Shown in pieces: positions 24,422-39,449 of a DNA stretch of 64,000 nucleotides. The position numbers and the translations under genes were made by a program. Origin of the DNA: Vitrella brassicaformis CCMP3155. Taxonomy: Eukaryota; Protista; Chromerida. The DNA lies in the NCBI GenBank assembly GCA_001179505.1, contig CDMY01000201.1, positions 62,001 to 126,000 on the forward strand, given 5' to 3'. Position 1 is the first letter of the stretch. Each line of letters begins with the position of its first letter. The notes beneath the pieces were generated by a model. The model worked only from the letters and a program-made list of their open reading frames with translations. It searched no databases and had not been told where the DNA came from.

Positions 24422-27400
24422 TCACGAGAAATAGGCGGGGGTCCAGTTGGTGAAGGCCTGCCGACACAGTGGACACTCGCGCGGCTGCATGGTCTGAGCA
24501 CATTGAAGGCAGATGCAGAAGTGGCCGCACGGCTGCAGCACCACCGACCGCTCCCTCTCCTGGCACACTTGACACTCGGTCGCCTCCGCTCTCGCCCTCT
24601 GGTTGCTCTGCTGCATCTGCTGCCGCATTTCTTGACGAAGCTCGGCCTCACCCCTCTCGCGTGCCCTCTGCTGAGCCCGCCGCTCGAGTGACTGCAGCTG
24701 CGATTGCTCGTCGCTGAGTGCCGTCTGGCGATCCGCTAGCTGCATAGCAAAGCCGCTTAGCTCGTCTGCAGTGGTCAGTCCATTGAAGGTCTCGGTCAAC
24801 CTGAATGACTCACACATCACATCAAAGGACATGCACTGGTGTTGCCCGCCTCTGTGGTTGGGTGCTGACCTGTGGATGTGGTTGCTCCGTAGCTGATCTA
24901 TGTCGGCCTGCAACGCACGATTGGCCTCACCAGCGCTGACAGACACAAAGGGAGATGAACGTCATGGCGCTCTGTCGGAGTGTGCGTTGGCCGCCTGTCG
25001 GTTACGTACCTGGCATTCTCCTCCCTAAGCGATGCGACCTCCTGTCTGAGTGACGCCTCCCTCTCCCCAGCAGCACTGACGGACAAGGACGCGAACAGCA
25101 CACACACAGAGTGAGGCCCACTCATTGTGTAGTGGGTGAATGAGTGCCGTCTGGCTGACCTCTTGTATCTCTCGAAGTGGTGCTGCAGCTGGCGTACTTC
25201 GGCCTCCTTCTGCTCACGGGCAGACCTCTCGCGATCGATGTCACTGAGAGCACATCATAGGCGGTGAGGCGCACGTGGCCGTGTGTGCTTCCCATGTGTA
25301 CCTACATACCTGGTGAGCCGCTGGCGCTGTTGCGTAAGCTGCTGACAATAGACCTCATTGGCTTTCTGCATGTCAACCTGGAGCCGCTCGTTGGCCGCCA
25401 GAGTGTCGTTGACGGTCTGCTCCCCGGCCACCTGGGCCTCACGCAACCTACACACAACACATGGTTGATGTGTGTAGGTGATGTGTTGGTGTGTGTACCG
25501 TTCGCTCTCCTGCCGAGCGGCGAGAGTCTCTTGACGGGCGGCGTGAGTCTCCTGCTGGGCAGCATGAAGCTGTTGCTGAGCTGCCATATCCCGCTCCATC
25601 AACGCACGCCTGCAACAAATGAGACAAACGAGTGTGTCCTTCTCTGCCCCTCCCTGCCTCCCTCTCTCACTGCAATGCTTCGATCTGCTGGTCTTTGCGC
25701 GCCAGCTCAGCAGCAAACCTGACAGCGAGCGGCACTGAGACACCGTGGACACCCTGCCTTAAGCTGCCTCTCACCTGGCCCGCATCGCCTCAGTCTCCCC
25801 TCCACCACTCACACGCCCGTCGTCACCGCCCGCCGCCCCTCCATCGGTCTCTCCAGCCCCCTGACCAGCCAGACGCTCATCGCCACCGCCACCATGCTCA
25901 GTCACACCATCAAGCAACAGCAGGTCATCCAACTCATGCCCGCCATCGGGCAAAAGTGGATCCAGAGACTTACTGACAGCGCTCGCGGCAGCAGCGGCAG
26001 CTGGGCCATGAAGGGGGCTGTTGGATGGTTCGCTGTCCACGAGCTCGAGACCACTATCAGCCTCTCCCTCCCCCTCACGCACAGATGGGCGGCCGTCTTC
26101 CGCAATGGATGGTGCTGCTGCGACCAATGGGGGAGGGCTGGCCGATGCGGCAGGGATAGCCTGTGGCTTCTTGTTCTTGTGCCGTTTTTTCTTCTTGGCC
26201 TTCTTGCCGCCCTCGCCCCCCTGCTGCCCGCCCCCACCATGCTGCGGCTGGTCCTCCTCGCTTGAGAACTGCACGTCGAGCTCTCTCAGGAGGTCCTTCT
26301 CATTCTTGCGCGCCGTCGCCTCCCTGGCTGCCATGGCGGAACTGACGGCCTCGTCGGTCGTCTTGTCGGCTTGGCGCTCCATGCGCCGCTGCTCCCGAGC
26401 CTTCTCCTTCTTCCTGCTCTCGAGCCTCTCACGCAGCTCCTCGCGGACGAAGTCACAGAGGCTCTTGGGCTGGTCCTCCACGAGGGGCTCCTCGCCGGTG
26501 ACCATCTTATGAAGCGCATCTGATACAAAGGCGGAGCTGAATGTATGTCAGATTTGGTCAGGCAGAGCGGTACGCGCCTGGTAATGCTATTCGTACCGAT
26601 CTCTCTGACCACTTCTGCTCTTGCCGCTGTGTTTTTGCTGATTTGCTCGATGAGGCACGTGATCTGGCTGTCGACGTTCCCCTTGTCGGCCTTGGACGCG
26701 GTGGCCTTGGCCCTCTGCACCCTGAGGTTGTTTAGCTTGGTCTGCAGCGTCACCCGCAGCTTCTCGATCACCTCAAGCTGCTTGCGCTTCTCGTGCAAAT
26801 CCTGAACACAACACTGACAACCACACAGTGACGGCTCCAGACTATCCGCAAGACGTGATCTCGTGTACCGCTATCTGCGCCCTGTGCCTCTCCTGCTGAC
26901 TGATAGCGGCCGCCATCTGCGCCATGTGCCTCTCCACCTGACTGATAGCGGGGTCCTTCTGGTACACCAGCCTGGTGGCCTCTGACATAACACAACGAAG
27001 GAGAAAATACAGATGTGTGTCCCTGCCCTCTTCCCTTGCTCAGCTCACTCACCAGTGAGGGCGGCACGTAATGCATCGACATCCTCCTGAGTGATGTTGT
27101 TGATGGCAGAGCAGTCCTTGAGAGCCTCGAGCTGCGCAACACACTGCCGATACGCGAACAGTTCAAGCTCGGTCACAGAGAAGGGGTTCTGGAAGCACTT
27201 TGCTGAGTCGGGGCCGCGGTTGTGTGACATGCTGTCCCAGTACAGCTGCAGCAATAGGAACCCCCTGTTCATGACCGTCTGCACCCATGTGGAGGGGGCG
27301 AGGGGGTTGTAAGACCGCACGAGGGCACAGCACAGGTGCTTTGGGAGACGCGACGAAGAGTCCTGCTCATAGCGCGTCTCGAGCACGGACGGGAGACCTA

Positions 27401-30400
27401 AACAGGAGGCAGGCAAGCGGGCAGAGAGACGGGGTGGCGGTAGTCTAGCTAGTTGGCTCACCTGTCACGATGACTGGCTGTTTGTAGGCGTAATTCTCAT
27501 TGATTCCTCCAACGTATTCGAATTCGATGAGCGGAAGGAAGACATCGAATGCGAAAAGAGGACATCGACGAGAGGAGACATCGACGAGAGGAACGCCTGC
27601 AGGGGTCCACACGCACAAGCGCATAGTCGCACAAGCTGACATGCCCTCTCTGCGCATTCACGTACTTATGAGGTCCAGAACGAATGGTGGCTCGCTTCTG
27701 ATCTCCGTCTCCTTGGCTCGCAGCCTCTCCTCCCTCCTCTGCCGCTCCGCCGCCCGTCGGTCCTCCTCAGCTGCGTCAGCTGCTGGCGGCAGGCGGGCGT
27801 CATCGGCCGCCCACTGACGGTCTTTGACCTCATGCGCGGCTCGCAGCTCACTCTCACGCTCAGCATCGGCCCTGTCGACAGCCCCCTGCACCAATGACGC
27901 AAAGTCACCACTCGACAGGAACTGCTGGCTGATGAGCTTGCCCAGCGGGACGCGTGCTGAGGAACAAACAGGTGTGGAGCAGACGCATCTGATCGATCCA
28001 CATCGCTTCTGCACTTCGCGTACATGACAGAGAGAGCCTTGCGAGTGTGAGGTCCTCTAATGCGAGTCGAAGGAGGGACACAACGGTGTTTGCGGTGACA
28101 GGCAGACCTAGGCTCCTGAAGGGACACACGGCCAGCTGCATACTCGCTCGCAGACACACGAGTTTGTGTGACCTACTTGAGACTGCGTCGATTGGGATTG
28201 GTCTTGAGGGCAGCCGTCGCGGCGGACACGACTGTGTCCTCAACGATGGGCAGCGGAAACTCGCCAACCGGGAAGAAAGACAGATGGATGTCCCTGCACA
28301 CAATGGTCCCGAAGAGGCGTTCCATCGAACCCTGCGGACCAGAGAGATGCCAACAGAGAAGGCTATCAGCAAGGCTGTCTCAGTGTGGTTAGTGCTATTT
28401 CAGACCTTCAGTTGGTCGTATCGATAGGTTTCGCCCTCAGACTTGGTCAAGACCATATCGGACAGACTTAGAGTTTCAAACGACCTACCACAGAGGCCCT
28501 GCAAGCGATACGCCACATACAAGTACAGCCCAGTCTGTCAAATGGATTCGGCGGCCGACCTCGAGCAAGGTTAGATAGGGATTGAACAACATACGACATA
28601 GAGAGAGTGCCATTCGCCTGCACACACGCATCACATGTCATCAGTGAATGCCTCGGTTTCCCATTCTCCGCCGTGAAGTCATACCTCAGTGTCGTGAAGG
28701 GCGGTTCTTTCTTGTCGTGCCCTGTGTCGGCCGTCCGCCCCGCCTCTGTCCTCCCCTTTGTTTCCTCCGCTGAGTCTGCCGGCACGACAGTGGACGATGT
28801 GCTGGGAATGCGAGTGACGTCACGCGATGATGACGGTGGAGGGGAGGGACTGGTGCCGCTGCTGCCCTTGCCGTATCCTTCTGGCCGGGCCTTGAGCAAG
28901 GCACTCAACCGGTCGGCGAAGGCACGGCTCAGGCTTACGCCCTCTAGGCGCAGCGAGGCAAGTGAGGGCAGGCGACCGATGGCATTGACGAGTTGGGCGC
29001 ACTCCCCATCAGGCAGGCAAGTCAAATCCGCACCTGAGCGCCACACATACCTTGACAATCAGCGACAGCGTGCGCGCTCTCTTATGACCGCCTTACCTGC
29101 CACAGTGAGTGCCGTGAGTCTCTCTGCCCTCTGGAGGAAGCCGATGAGGTCGCTGACGTCATCGGCGGTCGGTGAGCACTCCCAGCGGATCGACAATGTC
29201 AACATCATGTAGGGTGAATACCTGATTGCAGGGAGGAAGCCGCGAACATGAGTGAATTGCTGTCCGTCATCTCTTCCCATCAACATACCTCGCCAGTGTC
29301 GCCACCAGCCGATTTTGCCTGCTCACTGAGATCAATGCAAATGGCGCTAGCAGCTCGCGATTGGCATACGATGAGATGCGGTCAGTCGAGCGGACGGGAC
29401 ACAACCTAATACCAGCCAGCACACAGTGGCCACGGGGTGTATTTGCATCTGTATGTGTGTGAATGACTCTTTACGCGTGTAGCAGACTTCGACATGAGAG
29501 CACGAGCATAGCGAGGTCTTTGGAGGAGAAGTAGTAGAGCCCACCAAGCTGGTAGATGGTGTGGAGGATTCTCTTGTCCGACAAACACCGCACCAGCCGA
29601 TTCTGACAGACACACAGCACAAGCGTGAGGGGTCGGTCACACATGGTCGCTCTCTACCCACCTGCTTGTTCTGCCGTTGTGCAGCCTCTCTGTGGGGGTC
29701 GCCTTGCGATGAGACCCACCGATCGATCGCCTCCTACACGGATCACACACACACACAAACACACACACAGTGGCGAGCAGTGATCGATCGGTCTACATGA
29801 TGGTCAGACCTTGCGGCGGCGATACTTGGCGAAGAAATCCAAAATCTGCAACCATAGGTGCACGGTGCACAGACCTGTGGGCGTGCGTGTTGGTGGCACT
29901 TCATTCACCTCCTGTATGAGACTGTCTTGTGAGGCCGCCGTGGGGGGCCCGGACAGGGCAGAGATGTCCACCTGCAAAATGAAGGGCATCACACACAGCA
30001 AGAGACGCATACAGGTGACCGAGGACTCGGTCATCGGCCCTTCCGGACCTGCAGAATCCGTTCGACGATCGGGTTGTCTTTGGCCTTGCCACTCATCAGC
30101 TGCCGATCACAGCAGCTGCACATATGAAGGCAATTCACTCGGTGCACTAAAGAGATGAAGGACAGACGCACCTGGCAAGGCTGTCCAGGACGCCAATTGC
30201 CATGCCGATGCTGCTGCCATCGGGGGCGGCGGATGCAGCGTCACTCGTCGCGACCGTCGACAGCAGAGAGCACATCACCTCGGACAGGCCCTCGCACGAA
30301 GCATACTGAAGTTGAGTGAAAACAGGAGTGCCGAGTGCTCATACATGCGCGTCGCATCCACTCTGACTGACCGAATTACGAGCAAGTATGAGATTGAGCA

Positions 30401-32285
30401 GATGAACCGAAGCCGTCACGACACCTTGTCCGTGGCGGCCATCCTTGGTCAGTCTGTCGCTCTGCAGGATGCTCACAGCCGCCGAGAGGAAGCCCGCCTG
30501 CGCAAGACGCTCGCAGTAGCCACATTCTGAGGAAACACAGACGCACACGAGATATCAATGTGCGCACACGAGATATCAATGTGCGGCATGGACCGTGCAC
30601 CATTACTCACCAGCCATTGCCAATGGAACACTCAGATAGATCCAGACGATGAAAGCCGGCCACTGAGCGGTGGCGTGGTCCTTCAGCAATGTGGCTATCT
30701 TGCCCAGGGCAGCGGAGCTCGCTGACACACTATAGCATATGGACGCCAACACACCTGCATCAGCACACGCCTACACACGCTCGTACAGCGGCATCCACAT
30801 GTCCCCCACCTAGCTCAGAGGGGAAGCGGAGGGCGTCTCTGAAGATGATGCCTATCAGCTCGTATGCCCTCCACACAATCACCTGATCACTGCTGATGAC
30901 CAGGGTCTCGACGAGCGCATCGATGTGGCAGAACATGTGCTGCTGAAACGCCCCCAGCGCCTCAGCCGTCACTGAATTACACACATAACACACACAGATT
31001 CACTTAAACACGACAGCCCTCTTTTCCGGTTCATCATGTGATCACCTGGGATTCTTTTGAGAACCACTGCCACATCTACCCCGAATTTCTGGTCCGATAG
31101 TGTCAGCCTCTTCACCCTTTCCTCCACCAAGACACCAAACAGCGGCAGCCACTCCACACCAAAGGGATACCCAGCCTGACAAAGCCATTTGAGGAAGCGC
31201 GTCGCCGCAGTCTGATGCTCTATGTCGCGGCTGCTGTCCTTGAAAATGGAAACAATGCAGCCGGCGAGGCCTCCCTGACCCTGCTGTCGATGCGCCTTGT
31301 CCTTTTTGGCCAGTGAGCGCACGAGGCCCTCGACTGATGGATCGTCGTTGGGCAGGCGGGGCGCTTCCGTGACTTTCTCCACATGGCTCGCGAAGGGGCC
31401 GATATCACCAGCCAGCAGAGCATCGGCAGCGAGGGACATGATGGCAACAACGTCAGAGCCGGACGTCTGGCCCTGCTGCCCGTTGGCCGTGACTTGTTGG
31501 TTGGATGTGATGGGGGAGGGGGGGGAGGGAGGGTATGGACGAGAGGAACCCGCTGGTTGCCGATTCGCTGATGCAGCCGCTGCGGCGATTGCGATTGACG
31601 ATGGGTTGGTGGAGCGAGTGGGGTTGGCGGCCTGCTCCTGTTGGGCACATGCGAAGATGTCGAACGCAGTGAGGGGCTGACGGCTGCCGTCCTGACAATC
31701 ACACCCACACCTCACACACATGCACACCCCTCCCTCGTGTCTGTCTGTCTGTACCGATGTGGCGTCCAGAGTGATGTCATCCTCTCCAGGCACACCGCCG
31801 TGCCCCGCCCCTCCCATCAGCCCTGATCCGTCTTTCTGCTGCTGCATGGTGATGCCCACAGCTGATGCGTTGCCTGCTGGTGAGTGGGTGGCGGTGAGAT
31901 GCATGGAGTGGGCGCGGGAGACGGATGGCTGCGGCTGCTGCTGATTCTGATGGGTGTCGACGCCCTCACTAGGGATCGGCGGACGCTGGATGCCGATGGG
32001 TGGGGAGCCCACGGGGACCTGCTGTAGGAGCAACTGAGACCCGTTGTCGCTGTTAGTCGCAGGGGTGCGCTCTCTGTGGGGAGATGTTGCTAGCGGGGCA
32101 GACGAGCTACCATCTAGACGGCCACAGACAGGGCCCCTGTTGCTCCCGGACGACTCATCGCCACTCATACACACATCCTGCTGCTGTGGCTGCTCCCGCT
32201 GGCTGGCATCTCCTTTGTCGGGCCTGCTGCTGTCTGCCGTCGGGCTGCCGGCAGATAGCGCTTCGGTGGTGGCTTCCGCGGACAT
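24422..32285 (-). CDS. Large multi-exon protein: low-complexity N-terminus, ARM/LRR-like helical region, long coiled coil and C-terminal C3HC4 RING finger (putative E3 ligase); may be two genes
   Basis: The terminal exon has CQVCQERERSVVLQPCGHFCICLQCAQTMQPRECPLCR (IAP/MDM2-type RING). Coiled-coil exons at 24600-26900, LxxLxLxG-like segments near 28900-29300 and helical-repeat-like exons at 29800-31400. The RING is certain; continuity as one gene is inferred. Confidence 0.62.
30542..30583. repeat. Exact tandem duplication of a 21-bp unit in an intron
   Basis: cgcacacgagatatcaatgtg occurs twice in tandem. Confidence 0.85.
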
Positions 32286-32591
32286 CAGCGCTCAGGCGGC
32301 TATCGATCTGCATGAGTCAAAGTCAAAACAGACACCGCACGGACACAAATGAGTCGGAAAGCGAAAGATCTTCTTGACATAGTGTCAGAAGCTAAGCACC
32401 GGCACCAGATGAGAGCACTTCGCCGCCAAGTTCTCTGGCGCCCATTCTCGCCATGATTCGCCGCGAGCTTGCGAGCTTAAGCTCTTCAAGGAAAGAAAGA
32501 GGGACTCTGGTTTGCATCAGCTGGCGGTGCATACTCTTGACATCCGATCAGTCGATACTCATCTGTGTCTGCATCTTTCGTCGATGAGGCG

Positions 32592-33574
32592 ATGAGCGCA
32601 CCAGCAGCAGCGGCAGCTGCAGTAGCAGCATCGGCAGCATCAGCGGCCAACGGGACGACATTGACCAAGCCATCCCGAAGGACGCTGGCCGACTTCTCCA
32701 AACTGGGACTCTCATTCCTCAGGAGATACGTTGTAAGCCGCCAACACACTCGCACGCACCTATCCTCTGCCCGCGACAGCACAGCACGCTTGTGTGTGTT
32801 TGTGTGTTGAGCAGGCCCACTTTCACCTGGAGGATGTTGACCCAGGCCAGGCGAAGGAGGTGCTCGTCAAGGCCGTGGCTGAGCACTTCGAGCAGATGGA
32901 AATCAACCCCGACGAAATCATCAAGAAGTTCCTCGAAATCAAAAAGGCTCAGGAGGTCAGTCAGTCGACGGCCGGGAGGGTCGGCCAGCCAACACATACA
33001 CACGCCTGCCTGCCTGCCTGCCTGCCTCCGTGTGTGCCTGGCTGTGTGCAGGAGAACATCCCCGAGGGTCCGCCACTGCTGCACCCCATGTCAGCGCTGA
33101 ACGGCAACCTTCGGCAGGGCCGCACGACCCGTCAGGAGGCGCGCAAGCAGCAGCAGGCACAGCAGGAGGCGCAGCAGCTGTATGACGCCTCGCCTCTGCT
33201 GCCGGGGGAGGGGGCGCTGTCCGGCTCACTCATGGATAGCATGGGCGACGGGATGGGCTCGCGCAAAGTGACGGCCAGTGACATGGGCAACGGAGCCAGC
33301 AGGTGGGTAGGTGGATGGATGAATGGATGGATAATGGGGCGAATGGCTGTGCTGCGTATGTTGTGGGCGTGATGCTTTGCAGGAAGGGTTTCGGCAAGAA
33401 GCCAAATGCGGTGAGTGACCATATGCACTGCCTGAGTGATGTTGGGTTGCCCTCATATCTTTCAAGATTGATCTGGATGGATGGATGGATGGATGTGTGT
33501 TTGTGTGGTGTTTGTGTGTGCAGGGCAATGGGAACGGCAAGGGGGTGAAGAAACCCATCAAGAAGAAGAAATAG
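32592..33574 (+). CDS. SAP30-like protein (Sin3-binding domain), histone deacetylase complex subunit
   Basis: ADFSKLGLSFLRRY / AHFHLEDVDPGQAKEVLVKAVAEHFEQMEINPDEIIKKFL fits the SAP30 Sin3-binding pattern (DfskL..LrrY..f.L....k.eL..aV..HF......e.i..F). Basic C-terminus KKPIKKKK, with TAG at 33572-33574. Confidence 0.75.
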
Positions 33575-35499: not shown

Positions 35500-35764
35500 G
35501 GCGCTGCTATCTGGGGCAGGAGATGGCGACTCGGTGGAGGGCTTCACTCGCTTCGCACTGACACAAGAACACACAAAAGGGCAGGGGCTCGGTGAGAAAT
35601 GCACCGAAGGAACACGTGCTTACGGAGGCTCTGGTGGGTCGTTGCTGGCTGGGGGAGGGGGAGGTTGGTGAGTTGTTGACATGCAACGACTCCAGAGACG
35701 TAGAAGCGATGAATGAACAGATGAGCAGGAGAGACCCCTCCGAAGATGCGAGCTCATCTTCAAA

Positions 35765-35959
35765 AACTCACCTCCTTTTCGGAGGAGATCTCGCTGATCT
35801 GAGCCTACGGCAGGGCATATACGCCTCCCATAGTGTCTGTCGTGACGGCAGGAAGCCGAGATCTGCAGCCATCGATGAGACACAAACTGTGACAATCCTG
35901 TCAGCCATCACCGACTGCAGATCTGTGTCGGCTACCCCCCCGTCAGATCAGTAATAAGT
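35765..35959 (+). promoter_or_regulatory. snRNA promoter block upstream of U2 (proximal element 35903-35924, distal element 35858-35879)
   Basis: About 160 bp nearly identical to the block upstream of U1. Contains AGCCATCACCGACTGCAGATCT ending 35 nt before U2 +1. Confidence 0.8.
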
Positions 35960-36150
35960 ATACCTTCTCGGCCTTTTGGCTAAGATCAAGTGTAGTAACT
36001 GTTCTTATCAGTGTGACAGCTGATATTGGTTCATTGAACCATGAATTGTCACAAGAATTCTTTCTCCGGGGAGAGCGGTTGTTCAGGCTTGCCTGTCGCC
36101 CTCTCGCGTGTCGCCTCGCCCTTACACTCTACGGCGAGTGTGGCACACCC
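35960..36150 (+). ncRNA. U2: U2 spliceosomal snRNA (divergent Sm site and loop IV)
   Basis: ATACCTTCTCGGCCTTTTGGCTAAGATCAAGTGTAGTA 5' end with branch-point recognition sequence GTAGTA at 35992-35997. Stem IIa TATCAG/CTGATA, IIb GGTTC-ATT-GAACC, IIc TGTGACA/TGTCACA, and stems III and IV all fold. Confidence 0.96.
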
Positions 36151-37659
36151 TTTTCTGGGCCTTCGGGCCTAACAATTGCTTCTATCTGACTGATTGCGTA
36201 GCCCTCTGGCTGCACATGATAGCCGGTTTGCATTCGCGCAGCTGGTGACAAGGTCTTCATGTGTGTGTGCCGCTTATGCCATGTATTGCTGACTTGCGTT
36301 CGCGCAGTCAGGGATGATGGACTCCTTATATGCACCGCAGCTGGCAGCAAATCGCTCCCATCCACACGCAGTTGATGCGCTCGCAACACACGCTGGCAAC
36401 ACAGAGTCCTCACCTCACATTCCTCCCTGTGTGTCACACCACACCACATCACACCACACCACACACACACCCAGTCACACAACACACCAACCAGGCGGGC
36501 AGAGAGGATATGAGTCAGGCAGGCAGAGAAGAAATGGACCATTCATCCATTCCTGAAGGCACCAGGGAGCATGCGATGAGGCGCGATGCTAATCTGTGAA
36601 TGACTCTCACGCCCGAGGGCGCCGCTTTCACACGCACAGCGCACATAGGAACCCCCGCCATGCGGTGTCACAGCCAGATGCACGAGCAGACACCTATCTG
36701 TGCATCAATCACATCAAAGCATTCTTCCTTCCTTCCCACGCCCGAAGGCGCCACTGATTTCATTCATCGTGCACGACACACATCCACCACGTACCACACA
36801 GCACAGCCACATAGGCACAAGCAGGAGAGGACGGACACAGTGCGTACGCTACGTGCATCCCGGAACCAACCGATCCACTCGCCCGCCCATCCATCCATCC
36901 ACCACATCCATACAGCACAGCCCCAGCTGATTGTGCTGCACGAGCTGAGTGGACTGCACGAGATAGGTCCTGCAGCAGGAGGGCCACCACGGCTGGTCGC
37001 ACGTGTGAGTGAGAAGCCGAGGAGCCGCCAACCGCCCACACGCACACTGACACAGGCACACACACACACACACACACATACACACAAACAGAGAGAGGGA
37101 GAGAGAGCCCACGAGACGAGCGAGATGATGACGCCGATTCTCTGGCCGTCCATGAATGCAACTGTGCTGTGTCGTGTGCAGCGACCATCTATGAGAAGTC
37201 TGCAGCGCTGCTGCGTCCCCACAGCGGACAGCCAGGCAGCTGTCTGAGACCGTGGCTGAATCACATACTCGGCCGGCCTGAATCAGCCAGACACAGACGG
37301 ACGGACAGACAGACAGACAGATGGACAACTCCTATCGCGTGTCGTGACACGTGTGTGTGTGTGTGTGTGCCTCTTTGCCTGTCCGCCTGGCTTCTCGCCG
37401 CGTCAGCCGATGAGACTGCGGCACTGCGCGGAGGGGAGCAGAAGGCCACACAAAAGATACAACGACCTGCACGCGCACAAAAGGGAGGAATATGAAGGCC
37501 AAAGACAGGCACGGAGCTGATGGAGGGGTCAAAGATCTGCCACCAGCTGGCGAAGGGCGACGAGTTTGAGGGCATGCAACGCCTCCTCAGCGATCAGCGA
37601 TGAATGGCTGGATGAAACGAGGGCCGCCTAGCGGGCAGATCATTGCGAGCTGGATCTTT

Positions 37660-37854
37660 GACCTTCCTCCTTTTTCTCGCGGAGATCTCGCTGATCTGAG
37701 CCTACGGCAGGGCATCCATGCATCCATAGTGACTGTCGTGACGGCAGGAAGCCGAGATCTGCAGCCATCGATGAGACACAAACTGAGACGATCCTATAAG
37801 CCATCACCGACTGCAGATCTATTACTGCCTGGCCCGTGCTCCCACACTTTGTTT
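37660..37854 (+). promoter_or_regulatory. snRNA promoter block upstream of U1 (proximal element 37799-37820, distal element 37754-37775)
   Basis: Near-identical to the U2 upstream block. The proximal element ends 34 nt before U1 +1. Confidence 0.8.
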
Positions 37855-38012
37855 AAACTTACCTGGCTGGGCCTCGGGGGCGCTCACGAAGGTCCCTGTG
37901 CTGTCGTGGAGCTCCCATTGCATTCGGGGGTACGTGAAGCGGCATGGGGGGGCTATGCTCCTGCCAACAGCGGAATTTCTGGCAGAGCTGGCTTGCGTTC
38001 GCGCAGCCGGCA
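37855..38012 (+). ncRNA. U1: U1 spliceosomal snRNA
   Basis: AAACTTACCTGG 5'-splice-site-binding end, loop I GCTCACGAAG (U1-70K-type), loop II CATTGCATTC (U1A-type), Sm site AATTTCTGG at 37974-37982, and terminal hairpin GCTGGCTTGCG-TTCG-CGCAGCCGGC. Confidence 0.95.
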
Positions 38013-38355
38013 ACGAATGTGTGATCTGCCCGCCAGAGATCTTCATCGGGGTTTTTGTGCGGGAGTCATGCCGTGACTGTGCGTCTCTGTTCGAGAATAC
38101 GCGTCTGTCAGCCGTAGATCTCACGAGAACAGGCCAGCAATTCCGCTATTGGCAGGAGCTGGCTTGCGTTCGCGCAGCCGGCAACGACAGCGTCAGATCT
38201 GAAGGCTTGTGCCTGTCCTTCTCTTGCCTACACACCGTCCATTAGCAAGCTGCCACCGTGGATCTCGCCACACAATCCATTCAGCGTGATTTTGTGAATG
38301 AATCCATGCACGTCATGAAGCGACGCACTACCCTCCTCTCAATGGCAATGCTTTG

Positions 38356-38473
38356 TTACGCCCAAGGGCGCAGGGGGGTGCAAAAATTGCGTCAGACGCG
38401 TTAACTGGGTCCCACGCACGGCATTCTTTAGTAAAAGGCGAAAGAATGATGCGAATGAGCGGAACACCGCGAT
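38356..38473 (-). ncRNA. U5: U5 spliceosomal snRNA
   Basis: The minus strand reads ATCGCGGTG..TCTTTCGCCTTTTACTAAAGA (invariant loop I GCCUUUUAC), then Sm site AATTTTTG (38388-38381) and terminal hairpin GCGCCC-TTG-GGCGT. Confidence 0.95.
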
Positions 38474-38744
38474 GGCTGATGATGGAGGGAGAGGGGTAGG
38501 CACACATAGATCTGCAGTCGGTGATGGCTGGCGAGATCGATGATTCTCCCTTTTGCCTTTTCCGGCAGGCATCTTGCTGATCTGAGCATATGTTTGGCCG
38601 TCCATGCACCCAAAGTGTCTGTCGTGGCGGCAGAGAGGCGAGATCTGCAGCCATCGATGAGAGACACAGTCAGACAGTCGGGTCAGTCAGCCATCACCGA
38701 ACGCAGATCTGTGTTGACCTGCCTTCTGTTGCCGACAGGTGGCC
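38474..38744. promoter_or_regulatory. 271-bp divergent promoter region shared by U5 (-) and U4 (+)
   Basis: Proximal element in minus orientation at 38508-38529 (34 nt from U5 +1) and in plus orientation at 38689-38710 (20/22 match, 34 nt from U4 +1). Distal element at 38640-38661. Confidence 0.8.
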
Positions 38745-38890
38745 ATCCCTGCGCTGGGGCGTTAGCGTGGCATATGACGCTTTGCGGATGCGCGCTGATT
38801 GCTAGTTGAAAACTACTCCAGTTCCGGTGGTTCCTGCCGAAAGGTATGGTTCCCAATTTTTGAAACGATCGGCCCTCAGGGGCTAACAGA
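38745..38890 (+). ncRNA. U4: U4 spliceosomal snRNA
   Basis: ATCCCTGCGCTGGGGC (U6 stem II partner), 5' stem-loop with kink-turn GCATATGA-CGC-TTT-GCG-GA-TGC, TTGCTAGTTGAAAACTAC (U6 stem I region), Sm site AATTTTTG at 38855-38862, and terminal hairpin GGCCCT-CAG-GGGCT. Confidence 0.93.
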
Positions 38891-39449
38891 GTCGATTCAC
38901 TGTGTCATGTTCCACCACGTCATGCGGGGCCACGCAGAGAGTCAGTGACGCGCGGAGGCCCTCAGGGGCTAGCAGTCCGTCTGCACGTCAGGTGTTCACG
39001 ACACAGACATTAACGTGCAGCGCCTGTCAGGTGGCAGACGCTCGTGTATGCCAAACATCCATTCACGCAGCCCAAATCTATGTTGGCCACACCCGTCCGG
39101 TCTCATGCGCACGCACACATTCGTCTGCATGGAGCAGCCCTGCTGCACACTCCGGCCGCCCGCCCACCCATCTATTGAACTATTCACAAAACGCCCCACA
39201 CGCTCTCCAGCCTCCCTCGCAGCATCACCAGCTCTCCAGCAGATGCATCGTATACATGAGCTGGTTGGTCACCAGGGATCACTCTCACGTGCCGGCCGCG
39301 GCGCAGTTCCACACAGGCGGCTGCTCCTCAACGCACACACAATATTGACTGACACAGCTGTCTTTCGACTGGCTGCCTCATTCTTGTGGCGTACCTTCTG
39401 TCCTTCATTCATTCAGCCAGCCAGCCCTCAGCAGCTCCACAAACCGACC

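Follow-up and report, generated by a model that had tools for sequence, protein, structure and literature searches.

Mixed snRNA gene clusters in protists and plants

Genes for different spliceosomal small nuclear RNAs (snRNAs) are already known to lie in mixed clusters in related protists and in plants. We compare with these systems a 64-kb stretch of the genome of Vitrella brassicaformis CCMP3155 (assembly GCA_001179505.1, contig CDMY01000201.1, positions 62,001 to 126,000 of the forward strand; hereafter the window, whose own numbering is used throughout), which carries U2, U1, U5 and U4 snRNA genes in one compact group. Symbiodinium minutum has the genes of all five snRNAs in one cluster (Shoguchi et al., 2013, as relayed in PMC4083563), and about 70 further snRNA loci are scattered through its genome. 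The scattered snRNA genes of Plasmodium and Tetrahymena are contrasted there with those of Symbiodinium (PMC4083563). Vitrella resembles Symbiodinium in being a myzozoan alveolate with different spliceosomal snRNA genes side by side in a compact cluster. The two differ in that the Symbiodinium cluster includes U6, whereas a permissive Rfam scan finds no U6 in the 64-kb Vitrella window at E<=1, so that clustering of all five snRNAs is not seen here.

The units described in Perkinsus marinus, an alveolate on the dinoflagellate side, link spliced leader (SL) RNA, U2 and U4 genes; they are built round the SL RNA genes and take in U2 and/or U4 only (PMC3101222). Vitrella shares with Perkinsus the arrangement of different Sm-class small-RNA genes in short units, but its cluster includes U1 and U5, and no SL RNA gene is detectable in it (Rfam, E<=1). 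Arabidopsis has seven U1-U4 pairs and one U2-U5 pair (PMC545797), with spacers of 180-300 nt and an upstream element for each gene, and these pairs have been duplicated as units (PMC545797); snRNA clusters in Drosophila are among the cases that this source cites. Short mixed groups of snRNA genes, each gene with an upstream element of its own, are thus common to Arabidopsis and Vitrella, whereas the Arabidopsis groups are pairs and the Vitrella group joins all four Sm-class genes. The U3-U5 linkage of Euglena and the small-RNA linkages of trypanosomatids have been multiplied by locus duplication (PMC2784804). As in the Vitrella locus, small-RNA genes lie there in convergent pairs, short spacers separate them, and putative termination signals follow closely on the 3' ends. 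Unlike it, their partners are the U3 small nucleolar RNA, tRNAs and 5S RNA, and the trypanosomatid genes need RNA polymerase III (Pol III) together with tRNA-gene elements.

Against this background, the locus provides complete, high-confidence gene models of U1, U2, U4 and U5 for a chromerid, a member of the free-living, intron-rich sister lineage of the apicomplexan parasites. The literature that we searched holds no description of chromerid snRNA genes or promoters, nor of an snRNA proximal sequence element (PSE) in apicomplexans. Within that literature, neither a four-gene Sm-class cluster nor a lineage-specific PSE-like box had been described before on the apicomplexan side of the Myzozoa. 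An earlier note on this DNA had implied a greater novelty than is warranted, given the mixed clusters published for Symbiodinium, Perkinsus and Arabidopsis. The locus extends mixed Sm-class clusters from the dinoflagellate and perkinsid side to the apicomplexan side of the Myzozoa, and raises the question of whether clustering is ancestral and was then lost in the parasites with scattered genes. In practical terms the box itself is of most use: as a 22-bp element at a fixed distance, it can be used to search whole genomes of Vitrella and its relatives for further small-RNA genes of this class. In these lineages, RNAs such as telomerase RNA have been difficult to discover by computation, an approach that failed in Apicomplexa (PMC9841428).

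Four Sm-class genes and their upstream elements

A search of the whole window with Rfam 15 (cmscan at gathering thresholds) returns exactly four matches, all of them uncut and running from model position 1 to the model end. These are U2 at 35960-36153 on the + strand (RF00004, 151.5 bits against a gathering threshold of 46, E 2.8e-31, model 1-192/192), U1 at 37855-38012 on the + strand (RF00003, 85.8 bits against 69.5, E 7.5e-20, model 1-166/166), U5 at 38473-38358 on the - strand (RF00020, 76.4 bits against 40, E 3.2e-11, model 1-117/117) and U4 at 38745-38883 on the + strand (RF00015, 86.1 bits against 46, E 9e-18, model 1-138/138). The cmscan alignments show the GUAGUA branch-point recognition sequence of U2; the 5' splice-site recognition sequence ACUUACCUG, the 5' end AAACUUACCUG and the Sm site AAUUUCUGG of U1; the invariant loop I CGCCUUUUACU and the Sm site AAUUUUUG of U5; and the 5' stem-loop and Sm site AAUUUUUGA of U4. 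The locus is a genuine nuclear set of four full-length Sm-class spliceosomal snRNA genes. The earlier note had named these genes, with their positions, strands and diagnostic motifs, from the letters of the stretch alone, and had looked to the Rfam models for a check; the models for U1, U2, U4 and U5 all match, and the identities, coordinates, strands and motifs hold.

From the start of U2 to the end of U4 the cluster spans 2,924 bp, within the 3 kb that the note had allowed it. U1 and U5 converge, with their 3' ends 345 bp apart, and U5 and U4 diverge from +1 positions 271 bp apart, also as proposed. The gap of 1,701 bp between U2 and U1 is rich in CA/GT microsatellites; the (CA)n and (GT)n microsatellites at 37036-37075 and 37351-37390 form inverted arms about 275 nt apart. 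The permissive scan agrees with the note that U6 is absent from the window, and U11, U12, U4atac and U6atac are likewise missing from the 64 kb even at E<=1. The additional matches that it does return at this threshold are sub-threshold microRNA-like matches in low-complexity DNA, distant from the cluster. A tRNA scan finds no tRNA gene from 36013 to the window end, and scans of the region for bacterial-type promoters and terminators return nothing relevant. The description of the locus as holding one of each gene stands for the 64-kb window, where each of the four RNAs has one copy, and is limited to it.

Alignment of the four upstream regions reveals an invariant 22-mer, AGCCATCACCGA(CT/AC)GCAGATCT, in front of every gene. 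It is found as AGCCATCACCGACTGCAGATCT at 35903-35924 (+ strand, -57..-36) upstream of U2, at 37799-37820 (+ strand) upstream of U1, at 38508-38529 (- strand) upstream of U5 and, in a GAAC variant, at 38689-38710 (+ strand) upstream of U4, the last three all at -56..-35. The distance from the last base of the box to +1 is 35 nt in U1, U4 and U5 and 36 nt in U2, and the first nucleotide is A in all four genes. The window contains four copies of the 21-mer core of the box where 0.04 are expected, a count reached by 0/100 shuffles; one copy lies before each gene on the same strand as the gene, and none in the remaining 60 kb. Every pairwise window of the box is 18-20/20 identical and the -34..-1 spacers are unconserved, so that the upstream homology ends exactly at the 3' edge of the box and the unrelated RNA bodies start 35 nt further on. 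U5 has in common with U2, U1 and U4 the box and its immediate flank only, yet at the identical distance, which is the strongest ground for taking the box as functional and not as a mere by-product of recent duplication.

These observations lead us to infer that the box is a PSE-type promoter element common to the Sm-class genes, placed at a fixed distance and putatively bound by a SNAPc-like factor. Metazoan snRNA promoters carry a PSE of about 20 bp at a fixed distance, bound by SNAPc, along with a distal activating region, and those of the RNA polymerase II (Pol II) class are TATA-less. The Vitrella promoters resemble this combination of PSE and distal sequence element in having a box of about 20 bp at a fixed distance in all Sm-class genes, together with a distal region; SNAPc binding is here putative. 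They differ in that the box (-56..-35) lies somewhat nearer to the start than the human PSE, in that its sequence is lineage-specific and in that an inverted PSE-like copy lies in the distal element. TCACC, the core of the human PSE, is found within the box, a resemblance that we mention as a lead only. Plant snRNA promoters combine an upstream sequence element with a TATA element, whereas none of the four Vitrella spacers has a TATA-like element at -30..-25. Runs of five T lie inside U4 and U5, within their Sm sites, where Pol III would terminate. Because of the lack of a TATA-like element at -30..-25 and the T5 runs in U4 and U5, we consider transcription by Pol II probable. The shared promoter type in all four genes is also consistent with the common control that the earlier note had suggested. 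An exact scan of metagenomes for the 21-mer of the box found it at nine loci, each a single chance match in GC-rich, apparently bacterial DNA, with no adjoining snRNA or promoter block.

U2, U1 and U4 also have in common a distal block of about 145-180 bp, at 35657-35902 (+ strand) for U2, at 37549-37798 (+ strand) for U1 and at 38531-38688 between the divergent U5 and U4, where it has no assigned strand. Each block contains a far box, GCTGATCTGAGC, at about -169..-154 (35793-35804, 37690-37701 and 38576-38587), and, between about -127 and -80, a well-conserved part with an inverted PSE-like box, AGATCTGCAGCCATCGATG (35859-35877, 37755-37773 and 38641-38659). This 19-mer has three exact copies in the window against 0.02 expected. 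Those of U2 and U1 occupy -101..-82 and that of U4 -104..-86, and the sequence agrees with the PSE read in reverse complement at 15/19 positions. The upstream regions of U2 and U1 align over 277 nt at 77.6%, rising to 91-95% over the proximal ~140. Between the U4 block and those of U1 and U2 the identity is 73-77%; the U4 block keeps its boxes despite a difference of about 25% from the U1 block. It fills the space between the U5 and U4 boxes, which makes these genes a back-to-back pair around one distal element, and this block probably serves both of them.

Read on the minus strand, the far boxes of the U2 and U1 blocks (35793-35814 and 37690-37711) give CCGUAGGCUCAGAUCAGC, which is not kept in the U4 block. 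This reading resembles both ends of the dinoflagellate spliced leader, as does CCGUAG..GCUCA, a resemblance that is a lead only.

The hexamer AGATCT is concentrated in this region, with 13/23 window copies in 35700-39000 against 0.54 expected (about 24-fold, Poisson P 3.5e-14), an excess that is partly non-independent as the repeated blocks contribute to it. Between the convergent U1 and U5 genes, three of these palindromes (38037, 38116 and 38195; span 38037-38200) are spaced at exactly 79 bp from one to the next.

The 3' ends and their downstream copies

In all four genes, a GC-rich terminal hairpin stands at the 3' end, with (U)AAC(A/G)A immediately after it. The U1 end reads ...GCCGGC-AACGA, with the motif running to 38017, that of U4 reads ...GGGGC-UAACAG and that of U5 reads ...GGGCG-UAACAA. 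U2 has an extra hairpin, GGGCCUUCGGGCC, at 36156-36171, past the end of the Rfam model, which is then followed by UAACAA; the mature U2 RNA or its processing signal probably reaches to about 36177. This extra hairpin does not emerge as a separate hairpin in the larger minimum-energy fold of the U2 3' domain. The nominal chance of finding (U)AAC(A/G)A in 4/4 genes is about 1e-10, or about 1e-7 without U2, figures that are generous given that the motif was defined post hoc.

The terminal hairpins of U1 and U4 recur downstream as copies, which we call echoes. The U1 echo (38133-38187, + strand) lies where U1 and U5 converge, in the spacer between them, and consists of an inverted copy followed by a direct one. 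The inverted part corresponds to U1 nt 103-129, the region of the Sm site, at 93% (38133-38159), and the direct part is an exact copy of U1 nt 131-162, comprising the terminal hairpin and AACGA (38156-38187). Two hairpins like the terminal hairpin of U1 lie downstream of U2 (36220-36251 and 36286-36317, + strand), and a copy of the U4 terminal hairpin, matching at 18/19 nt, lies 74 nt past the U4 3' end (38957-38975, + strand). The hairpin core TTGCRTTCGCGCAG has four copies in the 64 kb, all in the cluster and all on the + strand. An RNA read through from U1 (37950-38195) would fold far better than its shuffles (z = -5.5) and would place the Sm site inside a 27-bp helix; the corresponding fold on the U5 side is ordinary (z = -0.08). 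That the echoes act as back-up termination or processing sites is a tentative reading, to which we give somewhat less than an even chance; otherwise they would be relics of rearranged copies.

Two further hairpins in the spacer between U2 and U1 (36605-36626 and 36734-36755, 129 nt apart) resemble the terminal stem-loop of U5, reading GGCGCC(C/U)UCGGGCGUG on the minus strand. They may be relics of older U5 copies or may have arisen by chance.

Proposed expression of the cluster, and its surroundings

The reading that we regard as highly probable is that of four separate, PSE-driven transcription units with one promoter type, probably transcribed by Pol II. Each gene would be a short unit of its own, in which a SNAPc-like basal factor would bind the 22-bp box AGCCATCACCGA..GCAGATCT and set the start at an A, 35 nt (36 nt in U2) past the last base of the box. 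The distal block (about -176..-80), with its inverted PSE-like box and far box, would act as an upstream activating element, and the one block between the back-to-back U5 and U4 genes would probably work for both. Pol II would be the polymerase. The 3' ends, of which we are less certain, would form at the GC-rich terminal hairpin followed by (U)AAC(A/G)A, and the hairpin copies downstream, which are found also in the spacer where U1 and U5 converge, may give back-up sites for termination or processing. The idea that the locus fixes the stoichiometry of the four RNAs is speculation on the part of the earlier note, as the genes are separate units with their own boxes and differing distal architecture and U2 lies 1.7 kb off; linkage alone sets no RNA levels, and nothing measured supports such a role.

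Several features weigh against the reading of four separate PSE-driven units. Promoter function is deduced from conservation among four paralogous promoters of one genome, and the 91-95% identity of U2 and U1 over ~140 bp could reflect recent gene conversion as much as constraint. In U2, the Sm region has AAUUCUUUCUCCGG in place of the consensus AUUUUUGG, which is U-rich and non-canonical relative to A U4-6 G, and a T4 run stands where the Rfam extent ends. The structure of the echo hairpins is kept in 93% of cells, and two of their pairs are changed on both sides, but their covariation is weak: it comes from three distinct sequences and is equalled by 112/500 shuffles, and is thus not significant.

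The first of these points can be developed into an explanation of its own, in which the upstream blocks are the footprint of a recent local duplication or gene conversion with no promoter role, the real elements lying elsewhere or inside the genes. The alignment of the U2 and U1 upstream regions, at 277 nt (77.6%; 91-95% over the proximal ~140), is indeed longer than a promoter needs, and the comparison covers a single genome. We nevertheless find this improbable, since U5 shares the 22-mer and its immediate flank only and still has it at the identical distance, three discrete boxes survive in the U4 block despite a divergence of about 25%, and the homology stops at the 3' edge of a box that is absent from the other 60 kb, with the RNA bodies beginning 35 nt later. 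The unusual Sm region of U2 would in turn fit a cluster of silent or redundant copies, a decaying duplicate of working snRNA genes at other loci. This has little chance of being right, as four full-length genes with intact functional motifs score far above gathering and carry the promoter box at its exact spacing; decay would not be expected to spare everything. The compactness of the cluster, with three genes on the same strand and downstream hairpins that could be processing sites, could also suggest one or two long precursors that are cut up so as to enforce equal synthesis. However, a promoter box of its own precedes every gene at the fixed distance, U5 is on the opposite strand and U2 is separated from U1 by 1.7 kb of microsatellite-rich DNA, so that the likelihood of a polycistronic origin is almost negligible.

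It is also conceivable that the distal block is itself a gene, with transcription from the inverted box (-100..-82) yielding a divergent small RNA of about 65-80 nt on the minus strand, perhaps akin to SL RNA. The inverted box agrees with the reverse-complemented PSE at 15/19, a start 35 nt away would give an RNA with GCUCAGAUCAGC and a small hairpin, and the stem of this hairpin would be CCUCC/GGAGG in the U2/U1 type and UGCC/GGCA in the U4 type, a compatible change. The U2 copy goes on with AG|GUGAGU and a U-run, and SL RNA genes are linked to U2 and U4 in Perkinsus (PMC3101222). Set against this, the would-be spacer (-127..-101) is among the best-conserved parts of the block (7-9/10 per window between the U1 and U4 blocks and 9-10/10 between U1 and U2), whereas the real spacers are unconserved. 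The parts that resemble a 5' splice site and an Sm site are found in the U2 copy only, CCGUAG is lost in the U4 block, and in the U4 copy the RNA would enter the PSE of U5. No Rfam family, SL RNAs included, matches the block on either strand at E<=1. We accordingly see a very slim chance for such a gene, and an SL-like RNA was dropped as the main interpretation of the block on account of a conservation profile unlike that of a box, a free spacer and an RNA, and of the lack of an Rfam match.

The reading of separate PSE-driven units could be extended further, so that the cluster becomes a self-contained expression module with lineage-specific signals at both ends; taken as a whole, we consider this extension unlikely. 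The box may be the myzozoan or chromerid counterpart of the PSE and may mark every PSE-driven small-RNA gene genome-wide, possibly including those for telomerase RNA, U3 or MRP. At the other end, the terminal hairpin, the (U)AAC(A/G)A motif and the echoes may together be an undescribed system of 3'-end formation or fail-safe termination. Within such a system, the U1 echo may fold read-through transcripts into the 27-bp duplex, hide the Sm site and mark the RNA for cleavage, and may also insulate the convergent U1 and U5 units from each other.

As the earlier note had placed it, the cluster lies between two protein-coding genes, identified by flanking Pfam matches: an N-terminal exon of RPE (ribulose-phosphate 3-epimerase; PF00834) at ~35.4-35.5 kb and RCC1-like repeats (PF00415/PF25390) at 40.2-41.3 kb, both on the - strand. 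None of the 12 mechanically called open reading frames (ORFs) that span the cluster is on record. Past the conserved block and into the region upstream of the divergently oriented RPE, the flanks of U2 and U1 remain homologous at about 80% (35657-35760 against 37549-37650), which suggests that a local duplication took in part of the 5' flank of RPE. Further away, an ORF at 32794-33369 (+ strand) encodes a SAP30 Sin3-binding domain (PF13867, E 4e-9) and is probably an exon of a gene for a histone-deacetylase-complex subunit.

An old duplication is seen on the same side of the cluster. A 438-aa ORF at 30972-32285 (- strand) has as its only homologue found a 62%-identical protein of V. brassicaformis CCMP3155, a paralogue encoded on contig CDMY01000214.1 of GCA_001179505.1. 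The ORF and its paralogue are carried by an old segmental duplication that relates window positions 26001-32349 to CDMY01000214.1 (9593-15996 of the piece compared) in opposite orientation, with about 5.5 kb at 77% and 271 nt at 84%. The duplicated segment of CDMY01000214.1 has no snRNA gene and no PSE, the duplication stopping short of the cluster. Of 19 sequencing runs listed for this DNA, 16 contain all or part of the stretch, every one stored as contigs and none recorded as RNA. Among the runs, several marine sediment metagenomes of 2023-2025 contain 6-23% of the 31-mers of the window, a hint that sediments harbour Vitrella or a very close relative.

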